A DNA stretch of 61,339 nt from Polymyxa betae A26-41 (GCA_003693705.1 RBZT01000774.1:1-61339), one strand, 5' to 3'. Numbered from the stretch's first letter, positions 4,493 through 39,569 are shown. The notes: generated by a model not told the origin, from the sequence alone. Numbers and translations: made by a program.

Positions 4493-7400
4493 ATGATTGC
4501 CAACCTCAACACAGCCGCCGCCTTGCTGGTGGTACTGGGCCTAATCGCCGCCGGCGCCCTGGCCAACAACAACGACGACGACATCAACGACGCCGTACTG
4601 GACTCGGAAACGCGCGCCCTCATTCACCTCTTTACCCAGACGATTCCTGACTGGTGCGACCAGAACCGGCAGTTATTTTTCCTTTTTTTTGTGTAAAAAA
4701 CGACAAGAGTTTTTTGTCATTTGAAAAACTTCAAAACTAGTTCAATTCCATTTTTCGGCGATGTTGTTCGCGACGGAATCGTCTGATTCGATTGCAGGAC
4801 GAGAGGGCCGCCGAACAAGACCCAGGAGCGCCACTTCTTCCGGCAAGTGTATACTGGCCCCTACGTCAAGAGCACGCAGGCGGACTTCCTGCACTGCACC
4901 GACACGAGCCCGAACCCCTCCACACAGTACAAGAATTTCTCGCGCGTTCTCGGACGCATCGACCTGGCCCTGGGCCGGCACGACCACGACCTGGGTGTGT
5001 ACGGCCGCCTGTTCGACCTGGCCCGCGGCTATTTCTTCGACGGACCGGATCTCGAGTTGACGCGCTGGCTGTGCCGGGCCGTACAGGCCCCCGACCAGGA
5101 TATCGCGCTGCTCGGGGCGCGCCTGGCCCAATGCCTGCCGCCGTCGTGGGCCGCGGGCCTGTACGACGCCCGCGCTGCGGACGAATCGAATTCCGTTCCG
5201 TTCGAGGGCCCGTCCGTGCTGCTGGCGATGGTGCTGTCGCCGTATTCGCCGCGAATGGCGGAGATCGTCCATGAGCTGGTCGAGACGCTGCCCGAATGGG
5301 TCCGCGACCAACCCTCTCTGCATCTTCACGATCTATTGCATGAAATTATTTGGTAACGAATTTGGTCTTTTTGCTTTGAAACGGAACTTTTTTTCTTGTA
5401 TTTTTACATTTTTTATAGTCGAATCTGCTCCTGTTTTTGTCGCAATTTACGACTTTGTGTTTTTTACGCAATTTTCGACGTTTTAGGCCATTTTCACTTT
5501 TCTGGTTTCAGATTCGACTTTATCTTGGACAATATTTTCGATGTTTGTCATTGCTGATTGATTGTCGTCTGTAGGGCGGATATCGAGAATAATGATACCA
5601 TCATGGCCTTAATCAATCGAATGCGTCCTGAGGATGTCGACGTGGTTCTGAAACGTGAAAGTCAGGTTCCGCTCTATGAATGGCTGCAATATTTTACGAT
5701 GCATCTGGTCCGCGGCATTCAAGATGGACGACTCGATATGGCCAAGCTCACGAGAATCTTCGCCAGATTTGATGACTGCCCGAAACGATCGAATCAGTTT
5801 TATATCTGCGCTACCATGCAATGGAATGTCGATTGGATTCGCGACTTCCTCTGGGAACAAACTTTCAATTGTCGCGAGTAAGGAGAATACGCATTTTTCT
5901 CGAATTGAAAAATCAAGTTTTTTCTGTTCTGGAAATCTTGTGGTTTTATTTTGTGAGGGCAGTTTGCTTATCAATGTTTTCGAGAAATACTTTGAAAGTT
6001 TCTATCGATTCCTGCTTTATGAAGAAAGTTTTCCTTTTTTTTCGTTTCGATTTTGTTTTCTGAAAAACACTTTAAAATTTTTCCATTTTTTAACTTTTAA
6101 GGAAAAATTCACTGTTCTCTCTATTTAGCGTTTCAGGACATTATCGTGTCTTGGTTGCGTACTGACCCAATGGGTTCTGTCTCATAGTGTCCCGGATTGG
6201 ATCTGCGTCGAGCTTGTGAGCCGCTGGAAGCGAAGCATCGTCGTCGCCGACGACTTCCTGTCGACCCTCTCTCAGCCCAGCGACGCTGCTGTCCAGTTCC
6301 GCCATTACCTCCTGCCCGAATGGTAACGTTAATTGGTGTAACGTTGCCAGGACATGCGGGCTGATGCGATTGGTTTGCGCAGGTTGAAATACCAGAAACA
6401 GCAGCAATGGTCGGGCATGACCTATTCGATGCGCGAGGTCACGATGTTCACGTGGCTCTTCTATATGATCTGTAACGTGGAACTCGATATCGTAACGTTA
6501 ATTGGGCGCGAGGACCCCGTCTCGCCGTCCGATCGTTCCGCGGCCGATGCCCTGCGCACGTTATATACGGCGCTGGCGACCGAGTAAGCACGCCAACTGT
6601 CCCAACGTTAGGGATTAGGGTTTCTCACCGTTCTGCAGTCTATTGGATGCGTGCTATCCGCGTCTGATGGTCCCGATTGATCTCAGCCCGACCTACCTCT
6701 TGCCGTACTGGCTCATGCGGGCCAGCCGTTCGGACCTCGAGAACGAATGTGACTGGCGCGGCCGCAACCTCAATTGCCTGGCTTGCGCGCTGATCTTCTT
6801 AACGCTGCAGACCACCCACGACACTGTCGCGGACCTGCTGCCCATGCTGAAACGTGTCAGCAACGTTACCGAAACGCTCGGCGACGCAGCCCCGTTCTAC
6901 GGGCCCGTCCTCGGTTCGGCGCCCGACGCAATCGGGATCGTGGACCCCAACCAGGTCGCCGTACTGGCTCTGCTCCATGACCCGGACCTGCGTCACGATG
7001 CCGACACGCGCAAGCTGTGCCAGGCGCTGGATGCGCTGGCCCCGGACGCGGTCCGGACGCTGACCTGGTTCGCATCGGAGCCGTCGTTGTATCAGTCGAC
7101 CATGCGGGTGTATCTGGCCCAGACCATCATGGCCCTCGAAACGGGTAATGCTGCCCCAGCCCCCTTCTGTTGTTGTTGTGCTGATTGCGTTTGTGCGTAG
7201 CGAATTTCTGCTACTCGTTGATGGATTGTATCGTTCCAAAGAAACAGAATCGGGTAAACGCACTTTTAATAATGTTTGTACAATTTTCTGGTTTTTTTTG
7301 TATCCAAACAACCAAAATCTGGAATTTTTTTTCTATTAATCAAGATTAATTGGTCTGAAATATTTCAGTGAAAGTTTGTTGTTATGCGTTTAACAGTTAA

Positions 7401-34657: not shown

Positions 34658-35771
34658 TATCACAGCGAAGCGAAATTGAACTTTGCATGAATCGGAAACA
34701 TTGTGTGGAAGGTGAAGTTCAGAATAACGAATGGCTGGAAACCCTAACAACGGACGCAGCAGGCGCATTTTATGCGCTCGCGAATCGACCTTCAAGTTAC
34801 GTTACAGTGTCTTCCGAATACAGATTATTGCCGCCCTGGAAGACGATTGCTTTCATCGTCCACTAACCTCAGCCGGATCTAATTGTTTTTGAGCAGCAGA
34901 ATCTGCATTCCTTGTGACTCGGATATTGGAAACAGGTCGTTCTGCATTAACGAGATTGGCCGTCTGACACTCGAAGTGAAAGGCAGATTTCATCAATGTA
35001 ATCGCAAATATGCCTTCGTAAGATGATACCAACATACCATTGCTCTTTTATAACTTGAATATCTTCCTCTAGTATGATCTTCTCCTCGGCTGGTGAGTCT
35101 TATATTTAATTGATCAAAAATTTCAGGGTTATCAAGTTGGTCCGATTCTTTTTCGGCTTCAGAGGTGTTGATCGTCTGGAGATTTAATCAGACATGGTCG
35201 TTCTCGTTCGATCATTCTATGAATTTCAGCTCCTGTTCGCACAATCGTTTCTCATATTTGCATTCACAAGCTGCCTTTTTCGCGTTTGGTAACATCTCAA
35301 GACATCTTCGCACACAGTTCATATCATTGGTACGGTTCTTTCCGTGTCCTGCCCCTTCTTTCATCCTGGTCGTGTAGCACAAAACGTTGCATCTCAAGCT
35401 GTCGTCTCTGCTCAATCTCTGTTCTAGCTTTGCCAGATACCTATTCGGTTCTAATTCTTCAATCTCGCTTCTTTTATCTATTGTTCTGTTACGATCCACG
35501 TCGCTGTATGTCTGACTATTTTCGTGCTTCTATTATCATCTTTGTATGACGATTTTGCCAGCTGAATATCGCTTCGTGTTGGGCAGTGATATACTGGTGA
35601 ATGGATATGTGCGTGGCTCCCTCTCTTCTTGGCCAACCCCATAAAAAAGTCGTCGACCTCATGGAACCCCTTCAGGACGCCTCTGCGACCGACTCCTCTG
35701 CTTTTACATTACGGGTTACAAGACAAACTCTCATGACGAATCCAACCATGAAAATCGAGAAAAAAAATAAG

Positions 35772-35843
35772 TTCCGATACGGGGACTCGAACCCCGGTCT
35801 TCAATGTGAAAGACTGATATACTGACCCCTGTACTATATCGGA
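35772..35843 (-). tRNA. tRNA-Glu(TTC)
   Basis: Full cloverleaf: TCCGATA acceptor, TCAGT-CTTTCAC-ATTGA anticodon arm, GGTTCGAGTCC T arm; poly-T terminator downstream. Confidence 0.95.
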
Positions 35844-36140
35844 AGATTTGTGGTTGTTAGCATATGAGCGCTGTTNNNNNNNNNNNNNNNNNNNNNNNNN
35901 NNNNNNNNNNNNNNNNNNNNNNNNNNNNNNNNNNNNAAACCCTCTCCCGTCTAACAGTGGTGACAAATGTGCGCGACCATTCATCAGATTTGTTGAAGCC
36001 CCGAAACTAGGGAATGCGAGAACCGCCATATTGCGACACGCATTAGTTTTTTTTGCGTGTCACTTAATTTTTTTTCGTCTGATTATCTCGTCGTCGTTAT
36101 GGTGATTTCGTCGTCGTAGTAGACCCTACAGGAGGCTATT

Positions 36141-37765
36141 TTGCTCGCGCCGCTCTTTACCCCGCACCTTATCAAGTCTTATCGTTTCGGGGTCAACACT
36201 GCGATGTTCTGTCCACGATCTGGGAAGCCGGACGGGCAGTGTGGGACCGATTGCCCCTCCAGCCAATCTTTGATCCAGCAGACGATCAAAGAACAGCTGA
36301 TACAACTGGCTGGTTCCAAGATCGTTGCAGAAAAACGCCGACGTTTCGGACGCCCTGCTACGACGATCAATCCAGCTCTGTCCAAAATTCACGTCACCGC
36401 ATTCCCAGCGGGTATGCATCCTGTTGACCTTAAACCGATGAAACTTCCTAGAGGAGCCCCTGTTAATGTTGTCTTTATGCTCGACTCGTCATATGATACA
36501 GTAGTGACAGGCCTACAAGAATTGCTGTTTCCATACCCAAAATATAAGATTGCTGATTATTCGCTTGCAGCTGCTGACGGTGCTTTAATCGTCGAAGGGA
36601 TTCCTTTTGCCGAGTTTCCTTTTAACCTTGGCAAGGGCGGCAAGAAAAGTTTATGGCTTGTCTGGCAAGAGAGAGACGAATCTGCATCAGATAATCATTA
36701 TTTATCAGAAAATGACTTTAATGATGTCACAAGAACTGACGTCGACGCTGGTACTACAGAGGGAAACACTATCACCAACCTTCTTCCAATTACGCAATCA
36801 AGTAACGGGAACGAATTCTCATTTTCGCTTTTATCATGCCCAGCATTCGGTGATACGACTTCTCTAAAATTCGAGGAAACTTATGATCTGGCAAAAGCAG
36901 ATGTGGCGGTCACTCATCAATCAGTGGCGATACTCCGCCGAATTGATCCGGTTGCTAAGCAATGGACCGAATGTTTTCTGAAAGGCTTTGATGTTCCAAA
37001 TATGGAGGATCCGATAACTGATGGACAATTCAAAACTGTTTACAGAAATGCATTGTTTCCTTATGTTTTCAAGCAATCCTCTGTGGTTTTCAAAGTCGCA
37101 ACGGATTCTTAAGATGATCGATTGGTTTCAAATTGCAGGGCCGTCCAAATGGCTGCACTCTGCAGCGCTGCTTCCGAGGAATTCAATTCCAATCTTCCCA
37201 AGATTACCACATTTCATTCTGCGAGTGTGTAATTGTTGAGCTTCCTGAAACGATCGACATTCTCCATTCGACTAGCTCACAGCTCAGCATGATGGCGCGG
37301 AAAGGTTTGATATGGCTGGTGGAGAATCAGATTAAAAGCCGACGCTTCGACAAATATGTTGGAAATACCGGAGAAATCGTCCCCATCGAGTTGTGCACAG
37401 GGGAACGCATGAAAAAAGACCGCTTGTTAGCCACTGCATTTACTCATTGGACGTATGTTCGATCTAATCAGAAATGCATGGTCTTAGATTTGCCAGGAGG
37501 AGGGGGTCAGTTCACTGATGTGGAAATTGTAACAGTTGAGGAGCCTGACACCAGCTTCGAATGCGGCAACCTGGGGGCCTCATCGATTACGAAATTCTTT
37601 CAACAGCATCAATGCAAGCTGATCTGCCAACTACTGAGTATCTCGTCAAACCGGCCATTAGTGCCCATATCACTTTTTTCGGATCAAAACCCTAACCCTA
37701 ACGATTGTGGCAGCGAAGATTTACGCGATTTGCCAGCGTTTATCCCAACCCCGACAATGTTCTGA
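36141..37765 (+). pseudogene. Alpha-kinase (MHCK/eEF2K family) with one stop (37110) and one frameshift (about 37197)
   Basis: GQFKTVY, VVFK, EEFNSNLP, LVENQI..FDKYVGNTG, AFTHWTY..S..MVLDLPG, FTDVEI, GNLG..ITKFFQQHQC..IC. Confidence 0.88.
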
Positions 37766-38139
37766 GGAGGAGGATTCACTCTCAAAGGGCAATGAATCTG
37801 AGAGCGATGAAATTGACGCCGCAAACGATATCATGAAACCAGGCCAGCCAGACGGACCGCCTGGTGTCACAGTTGACATTGCTGCCAGTTTGAAACCCAA
37901 TATTCAGGATCAGTCATCCTCACTTAAACGCAAACGTAAACGCTGTGAGCCACTCGTTACGATAAAGCGCAAAGACCACACACTTAACAATCAATTGTCG
38001 ACGCGCCGTAAACCTGCGATGGCTAGAGACGCACGCAAGGATCAAATAGAAAAACAAAGTTTAATAACAAAAAACCTTAACAATATCAATAAACGTCAAT
38101 TTGAATCTTGAAATTCTCAAGATTGCATGCATAACAATA

Positions 38140-38565
38140 TTTACAGGTCGATCATGAGTGGCTGCAAGGCATCACGATGTTCACGTAAATGTAAATATGC
38201 ATGAGCCATATTTTCCATTGTTGGTGGAAACAGACCGACGACTGTGAGAGCAGCTGTAAAACCGGACGGTCGCGATCCGTATTCAAAAGATTGCCAAGAT
38301 CAATCATTGCAGATGATAAACAATGTCCTTTAAAGGAACGTTGCGCTTGATAAGATTTCTAACGTCGCTGATCCAATTCAGAGCTTCTCTCAAAAGCCGA
38401 ACAATAAATTGGTCGATCAAATCCATGAATTTTTATCCATCGCTGTAGGGTTCGGATAGAGATATCTGTGTTATAGTGTAGTCTAAGGCTTTCCACGATC
38501 TCTTCGTAGCTCTGACCAGCTTCAAGTTGATGCTGGACGAAGCCAAGGAGCTGCTGTGTCGGCAT
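38140..38565 (-). pseudogene. Internally deleted transposase remnant (N-terminal Clr5-like HTH plus C-terminal tail)
   Basis: SYEEIVESLRLHYNTDISIRTLQRWIKIHGF HTH; tail PPTMENMAHAYLHLR; no DDE core present. Confidence 0.6.
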
Positions 38566-39569
38566 TGAGAGCTAAGGGGCAGATGGCGTCTCCCGGGACG
38601 GCGAGATATTCAGATGCAAGTGTATCGCTAAGCACAACGACGACGAGATAACCAGACGAAAAAAAATTAAGTGACACGCAAAAAAAAAAACAATGCGTGT
38701 CGCAATATGGCGGTTCTCGCATTCCGTACGAAACAGATGAAAAAAGTCACGGACTCAGTCGACTCTCGAGCTCTGGCCATGCTGGTCCATGCCTTCGCCC
38801 GACCCGGATGCGGAGTTGTCCTGCACGGTCCCAGTCCCCGACACATCATCTCCGCTCGGTCTGATCGCGCCCATACTGGACCCGCCCGTATAAAGTCCCG
38901 ATATCTCTAGATCGACTTCTGGTAATTCGAAACGAGGCGCCGTACCCCTTAGTAATCCACGGTTTATACAGGTCCGCTTTAACCGACAATTTTTATTGCA
39001 AAGATCTTGTATTGTCCCTTTTTGAATACTGAATTTTTACAGAAACTGCAATAGAGAGAATATTTATCTGCAGCTGCTGAAGCCAGCCAGCACTTTCAAT
39101 CTCTTCGAGTTCTTGCAGAGGCCATTAAAGAGTGAAATTGCATTAACGTTCCAACCCGTATAAAAAGTAGGTGTTCTTACTATTATCATCATAAATTCAG
39201 CTTGGAAGCGTTTTTCCGATCACATCGTTTTGGAGATCCAGAATCGTGACGATTTAATTGGGGAATACCTTCAATATTTGGAATTTCTATGCTCGTGACG
39301 ACCTATATGTGGATGTAATGATTGAAATCTTCCAGTTGAAGAGAGATTCCAACAAACTCCGAGCATCAGACGATTAAAAGAAACATCACGACGGCAACAA
39401 AATTAAACCCTGCAGAATTGATACAACCCTAAACCCTAGTAACAGAAATGTATTCTGGTACAGATGACGTTTTCCCTGGGAGATGAGGTAATTTTGACAC
39501 GAACGGTTTTCTTACGTCTTGTGATCTCATAGGAACGTTTATTTATTATTATAGTCTTGTTACGCTATA

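Follow-up and report, generated by a model that had tools for sequence, protein, structure and literature searches.

Positions 36008-38728 of the analysed window, which is a stretch of 61,339 nucleotides from Polymyxa betae A26-41 (GCA_003693705.1, RBZT01000774.1:1-61339), are occupied by a 2,721-bp element with long terminal inverted repeats (TIRs). It is bracketed by a 6-bp target-site duplication (TSD) and contains what is left of two genes lying tail to tail, an alpha-kinase gene on the plus strand and a transposase gene on the minus strand. In order along the window, the features are:

36002-36007, no strand: left target-site duplication, CGAAAC, identical to 38729-38734
36008-36101, plus: left TIR, beginning TAGGGAATGCGAGAACC, from the repeat finder; the terminus is common to all copies
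36141-37112, plus: N-terminal portion of the kinase gene, 323 codons, Cys-rich at its beginning and closed by a TAA specific to this copy (37110-37112)
37133-37765, plus: alpha-kinase catalytic piece, 210 codons, Pfam match at 37193-37627, in a different frame from the N-terminal portion owing to the A lost at about 37200
37707-38111, plus: C-terminal tail of the kinase gene, 134 codons, acidic then basic (KRKRKR, NLS-like), frame-shifted
38153-38260, minus: remnant of the transposase C-terminal tail, matching residues 407-442 of protein P0009 (E 4e-4)
38261-38306, minus: deletion junction, at which about 310 transposase codons are absent, including the entire rva_4 catalytic core
38307-38565, minus: transposase N-terminus, with a first helix-turn-helix (HTH) at 38377-38565 and a second, frameshifted one at 38307-38366
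38633-38728, minus: right TIR, ending ...GGTTCTCGCATTCCGTA, from the repeat finder
38729-38734, no strand: right target-site duplication, CGAAAC, identical to 36002-36007

The repeat finder reports the inverted ends as two overlapping pairs of arms, 36008-36054/38682-38728 (47 nt, 94%) and 36047-36101/38633-38687 (55 nt, 96%), which combine into one TIR of about 94 bp with a single indel. The element begins with TAGGG and ends with CCGTA, its right end being the complement of TACGGAATGCGAGAACC, and the left TIR contains a short internal palindrome as well as a tandem TCGTCGTCGT-type motif. Both the TIRs of about 90 bp with TA..TA termini and the exact 6-bp duplication CGAAAC were thereby recovered as the original prediction had described them. 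That prediction had further held that removing the element restores a continuous frame. With the element and one copy of the TSD subtracted, the flanks indeed read in one frame (FVEAPK / QMKKVTD); the status of this stretch as a gene, on the other hand, is doubtful, as it spans only about 80 codons, runs into a stretch of N and, with the flanks searched unjoined, yielded no family match above the cut-off. This stretch (60 N at 35877-35936) interrupts the upstream flanking ORF and lies between the insertion site and a tRNA-Glu gene (TTC; 35771-35843, minus strand), which is separated by 165 bp from the element's left end. This neighbourhood is specific to the window copy: there is no tRNA gene near nine other copies, and hence no sign of tRNA-targeted insertion. 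The occupied right junction is present in public contigs of two studies (X1, X6) that bear the same organism label. The empty site, which the prediction had proposed to seek in other isolates, did not turn up as a joint of 36007 to 38735 in the contigs of four runs, absence from such short-read contigs being weak evidence.

The plus-strand gene is a single gene that appears in the ORF listing as three successive open pieces of 323, 210 and 134 codons. Searched separately and unjoined, these pieces gave a match of the middle one to Pfam Alpha_kinase (PF02816) with an E-value of 2e-26 and 93.7 bits (Pfam gathering score, 21.3), covering profile positions 66-185; the N-lobe of the kinase sits in the preceding, frame-broken piece, which has no score on its own. 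The catalytic piece also aligns to the kinase domains of TRPM7 (1ia9), MHCK A (3lkm) and eEF2K (7shq), which together with the profile match confirms that this is an alpha-kinase. Conserved are the HWTY His, the Asp of the DxxG motif, the subsequent TD and the H-x-C-x3-C zinc motif. Of the alpha-kinase motifs claimed earlier, the Asp, the TD and the His/Cys zinc module are in place, and the Gln of DLQG has become Pro in the window copy (codon 37493-37495), as the prediction had also noted. Among the sister copies, the one on contig C74 retains DLQG, and that on C383 has a 13-bp deletion at this site.

The gene is decayed in all the ways that had been predicted, and in one more. The codon at 37110-37112, a sense codon in the sister copies, reads TAA, and a run at about 37200 is short of one A; on both lesions, the copy alignment and the public contigs concur. 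Besides the substitution in DLQG, there is an additional frame change in the kinase tail near 37733-37760, a hot spot for indels, where extra bases are found in C383 (about 89), in C105 (about 18) and, numbering 11 or 95, in public contigs. Kinase domain and tail share one reading frame in the C74 copy. With its kinase gene broken in this manner, the window copy cannot make an active enzyme.

Less can be said about the N-terminal part of the kinase gene. Pfam finds no known domain in it, and AlphaFold2, given the 323 residues and a 5-row alignment, arrived at a mean pLDDT of 32, too low for a usable model. This part (36141-37112) is 64% identical to P0001, a sequence from an ENA contig, and a protein homologue search with it produced one match only, which is not enough to build a tree or to survey the genes nearby. 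The Cys cluster at the start of the gene (C-x2-C ... C-x3-C in C74 and C69; L057:2054-2110 in C74) is partly retained in the window at 36141-36260 and may constitute a small zinc-binding module without a family match.

On the minus strand, the first HTH is encoded by an open reading frame of 68 amino acids with its ATG at 38565 and has weak Pfam matches to HTH_23 and Clr5. A profile built from the HTH of seven copies and searched against 1.84 billion representative proteins retrieved mostly short fragments, plus two proteins of substantial length, P0009 (444 aa, E 1.9e-17) and P0029 (449 aa). These two are homologous over their entire length and consist of an N-terminal HTH followed by an rva_4 (PF24764) integrase core (E 4e-31 and 5e-39, respectively). 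Only residues 10-72, 76-95 (frameshifted) and 407-442 of P0009 are found in the window; its rva_4 core (residues 181-353) is unrepresented, which means that the core has been deleted. By homology, then, the minus-strand HTH protein is the N-terminus of an rva_4 integrase-core transposase, in agreement with the prediction of a transposase remnant that has lost its catalytic core.

The C74 copy keeps more of the transposase (residues 10-104 and 362-442 of P0009, the tail matching at E 6e-13), and stop-ridden relics of the rva_4 core persist in sister copies on C786, C69 and C133. Throughout the assembly, P0009 and P0046 match HTH, tail and stop-ridden core fragments only, so that no intact transposase was found, nor any copy with the intact DDE transposase and alpha-kinase ORFs for which the prediction had proposed to test. 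Scanning the genome with rve (PF00665) gave 150 hits, which were taken as mostly retrotransposons; none was correctly placed beside an HTH match. Outside P. betae, UniRef attributes one relative of the transposase core to Spongospora subterranea. In the atlas, P0009 is neighboured by rva_4 clusters that occur most often in Chordata and Basidiomycota and in some cases have a Clr5 HTH, which we regard as a lead only. The transposase homologue search returned two to four matches, again too few for a tree or neighbour-gene survey.

Is the window element one of a kind? Searching the genome (1,001 contigs, 27,085,814 bases) with the TIR and the whole element uncovered about ten further copies or fragments, all of which carry kinase pieces, HTH pieces or both, in the same converging arrangement. 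Two of these copies are complete at both ends: C383:22178-24702, 93-94% identical to the window element and flanked by CCCTAC, and C932:31213-33022, 83-88% identical and flanked by CGTCAC. A pattern search with the terminal 14-mer revealed a second subfamily with the same termini in otherwise unalignable DNA. Its members with matched ends are C74:8984-11996 (3,013 bp, TSD TTTCCG) and two deletion derivatives, of 1.3 kb on C387 (TSD CGTGAG) and 1.4 kb on C953 (TSD CTTTGT); C74-type and window-type elements have only the terminal 30 bp or so in common. Across copies, the termini read TAGGG, TACGG, TATGG or TAAGG at one end and CCGTA or CCCTA at the other. Five elements besides the window copy thus have perfect duplications and, with CGAAAC included, all six of these 6-bp sequences differ from one another, which cannot be due to chance.

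Relics of the kinase gene reside in at least eight copies and, as judged by a genome search with the Pfam model and the window's kinase piece, nowhere else. The proposed family of mobile alpha-kinases hence exists in this genome, although the suggestion that it seeded expansions of host kinases found no sign in its favour, since no kinase was detected outside the elements. Nor does the assembly contain an intact kinase gene, every copy having stops, frameshifts or deletions. Wherever both genes are visible (C74, C69, C133, C392, C360 and C961; several of the HTH loci were viewed as 3-kb loci), they converge. C105 covers the deletion stretch as a single contiguous match and shares the deletion of the window copy. 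That close copies have the core deletion in common indicates that the window-type subfamily was amplified as a non-autonomous element.

Two loci are more complex. On C69, a pair of termini 3.65 kb apart was considered as a full element and rejected because of unmatched flanks and a nested Copia-like fragment; the locus is a rearranged or nested relic, whose content (L058, G000:C69:2000-6200) includes an HTH, a core fragment, a kinase start and what by eye resembles a fragment of a Copia-type integrase zinc region. The C74 copy, in turn, lies inside 61-nt inverted repeats that are 80% complementary and about 4.2 kb apart (L057:1924-1984 and 6203-6263), and may represent a nested insertion into a different element.

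Comparison of the two subfamilies is informative as to selection. Blastn detects no match between window-type and C74-type elements, yet tblastx similarity spans the full length of the kinase gene as well as the HTH region and tail of the transposase. Over 255 codons of the N-terminal part of the kinase gene, identity is 46%, with pS at 0.87 (saturated) versus pN at 0.37; in the HTH region, where the proteins are likewise about 46% identical, the values are 0.72 and 0.40, all of these being derived from protein-guided alignments, which favour conserved stretches. Since the DNA can no longer be aligned while the proteins remain about 46% identical and silent sites are saturated, both genes were selected while the family was active, and these substitution patterns argue that the kinase and transposase genes were under purifying selection as the subfamilies diverged. 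Within the window-type subfamily, differences are distributed near-evenly over codon positions, as expected for copies that decay neutrally after insertion. Repeat-induced point mutation was considered as a source of these differences and rejected, the copies showing a moderate excess of transitions only and no strong C-to-T/G-to-A skew.

How does this element relate to known transposons? IS3EU elements have TA..TA termini and 6-bp TSDs and form one lineage with GingerRoot (Kojima and Bao 2023, PMC10045372); typically, they encode two proteins (PMC8232023, PMC10853768). Those described from fungi, namely rust fungi and Tuber, possess a 6-bp TSD, TIRs of more than 30 bp, TAYGG..CCRTA ends, and genes for a DDD/E transposase and an alpha-kinase in opposite orientation (Kojima 2025, PMC12730594). 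The P. betae family has the same hallmarks, that is, 6-bp TSDs, TA..TA ends (G or A at position 3 of the termini being slightly off the Y), long TIRs and an alpha-kinase gene opposite the transposase gene, and its partner gene belongs to the rva_4 transposase family. The assignment to IS3EU made in the original prediction is thus supported. The equation of rva_4 with IS3EU is supported by these matching hallmarks, by literature likening IS3EU transposases to rve-type integrase cores and by the lead-level atlas neighbours, Repbase IS3EU elements having been compared by description. Against the fungal families (of Puccinia and Melampsora, and IS3EU-1_TuIn), which are alike in TSD, TIRs, termini and two-gene layout, the differences are that the host here is not a fungus but a rhizarian protist, that the P. 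betae element lacks a TET/JBP gene, and that the window copy and its close kin are devoid of the transposase core; the P. betae sequences are not close to any of the fungal matches returned by the searches.

Among other relatives, GingerRoot (Cerbin et al. 2019, PMC6839031) resembles our family in its 6-bp TSD, its mostly TA..TA termini and its integrase-related DDE transposase, whereas the paper mentions neither a kinase nor a second ORF. REP9, or Styx, of Zymoseptoria (PMC8232023, PMC10853768) is a distant IS3EU relative that likewise has TIRs, 6-bp TSDs and extra genes, but differs in being active and much larger and in having four genes, with no alpha-kinase reported in these two papers. 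With respect to cellular alpha-kinases (1ia9, 3lkm, 7shq), the catalytic C-lobe and zinc module align (E about 3e-10); those enzymes have no counterpart to the N-terminal 270 residues or the NLS-like tail, and the gene here lies within a transposon.

Might the resemblance to IS3EU be superficial and the element belong to another superfamily with duplications of about 6 bp, such as Dada or Ginger? The missing catalytic core of the window copy, and the fact that likeness to Repbase IS3EU was established by description, leave some room for this; nevertheless, we consider it highly improbable, because TAYGG..CCRTA termini, long TIRs, a 6-bp TSD and an opposed alpha-kinase gene are what has been published for IS3EU, and the core of the relatives is of the rva_4 integrase type, sometimes joined to a Clr5-type HTH in Basidiomycota clusters.

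An intact counterpart of the two-gene arrangement is available from outside the assembly. On L065, a 3,440-bp Logan contig of run SRR29999185, an open 454-aa Alpha_kinase gene adjoins the 449-aa rva_4 gene encoding P0029; both genes are intact, oppositely oriented and 330 bp apart. No TIRs were found within this contig. Of the relatives encountered, the pair is the strongest candidate for an active one. Its genes are arranged head to head and those of P. betae tail to tail, which implies that gene order is not fixed.

This pair also bears on whether the kinase was a one-off capture, in which a non-autonomous element took up a fragment of a host alpha-kinase gene (Pack-type transduplication) unrelated to the lineage. 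A window copy without transposase core, and close copies derived from one deleted master, are the pattern that transduplicates would leave. The kinase, however, occurs in the divergent C74-type subfamily and other relics as well, was subject to purifying selection between subfamilies, recurs in the unrelated intact pair on L065 and in fungal IS3EU families (PMC12730594), and has no host alpha-kinase donor that could be found in the genome. Such a capture is thus largely refuted, and we give it a slimmer chance still than membership of another superfamily. Slimmest of all is the chance that these are domesticated kinases, i.e. host genes in old transposon shells: all alpha-kinase matches of the genome do fall within elements and the window copy does keep a 210-codon open catalytic piece, but the kinase gene is interrupted by stops, frameshifts or deletions in every copy, shows little codon-position bias between close copies and has lost the Mg-binding Gln in the best of them.

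Together, the evidence makes it very probable that the element at 36008-38728 arose by deletion from a cut-and-paste transposon of the IS3EU (IS3EU/GingerRoot) group and is itself dead and non-autonomous, and that the kinase is a regular, selected gene of this lineage rather than a chance capture. As neither gene is intact anywhere in the assembly, we infer past activity and ancestral structure from relics and from relatives elsewhere. The ancestral element would have measured about 3.8-4 kb and had long TIRs ending in TAYGG..CCRTA and two intronless, converging genes. One would have specified a protein of about 650 aa, made up of the N-terminal region, the alpha-kinase domain and the acidic/basic NLS-like tail, and the other a transposase of about 445 aa, in which two HTH motifs preceded an rva_4 DDE integrase core and a C-terminal tail. 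In keeping with the known biology of the family, the HTH motifs would bind the TIRs, and the DDE core would make cuts staggered by 6 bp, giving rise to the 6-bp duplication. The comparison of copies shows more directly that the window-type subfamily lost the core through one internal deletion and was then copied several times; given that a core-deleted subfamily multiplied, transposase must have been supplied in trans. Neutral decay of each copy followed, amounting in the window copy to one stop, two frame changes and the Gln-to-Pro exchange. As for the kinase itself, our best guess is a nuclear kinase, in view of its basic KRKRKR tail, that may have favoured transposition by acting either on the transposase itself or on a chromatin or repair factor of the host.

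What, then, does the presence of a kinase mean for the transposon? Protein kinases are unusual cargo for a DNA transposon. Their pairing with the IS3EU transposase is not new, having already been recorded for fungal IS3EU (PMC12730594), but has so far been mentioned in passing and for fungi only: a literature search for an IS3EU kinase led to that single passage in Kojima 2025, and one for IS3EU in phytomyxids found nothing. New here are the host, Polymyxa betae, the evidence for selection and the retention of the kinase in non-autonomous copies. The window copy itself is a dead relic, and no effect of it on the host is evident. The same two-gene design reaches a rhizarian parasite of plant roots, and this, along with purifying selection and the retention of the kinase in core-deleted derivatives, suggests that the kinase matters to the transposon and is not baggage. 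A bolder reading, which we put forward tentatively and think somewhat less probable than its opposite, is that the alpha-kinase would be an ancient and functionally required partner of IS3EU transposases across eukaryotic supergroups (fungi, Rhizaria and perhaps animals), a nuclear kinase that controls transposition or blunts host silencing and is kept in non-autonomous derivatives because the encoding copy profits from it. If true, these transposons would be the only source of alpha-kinase genes in Polymyxa.
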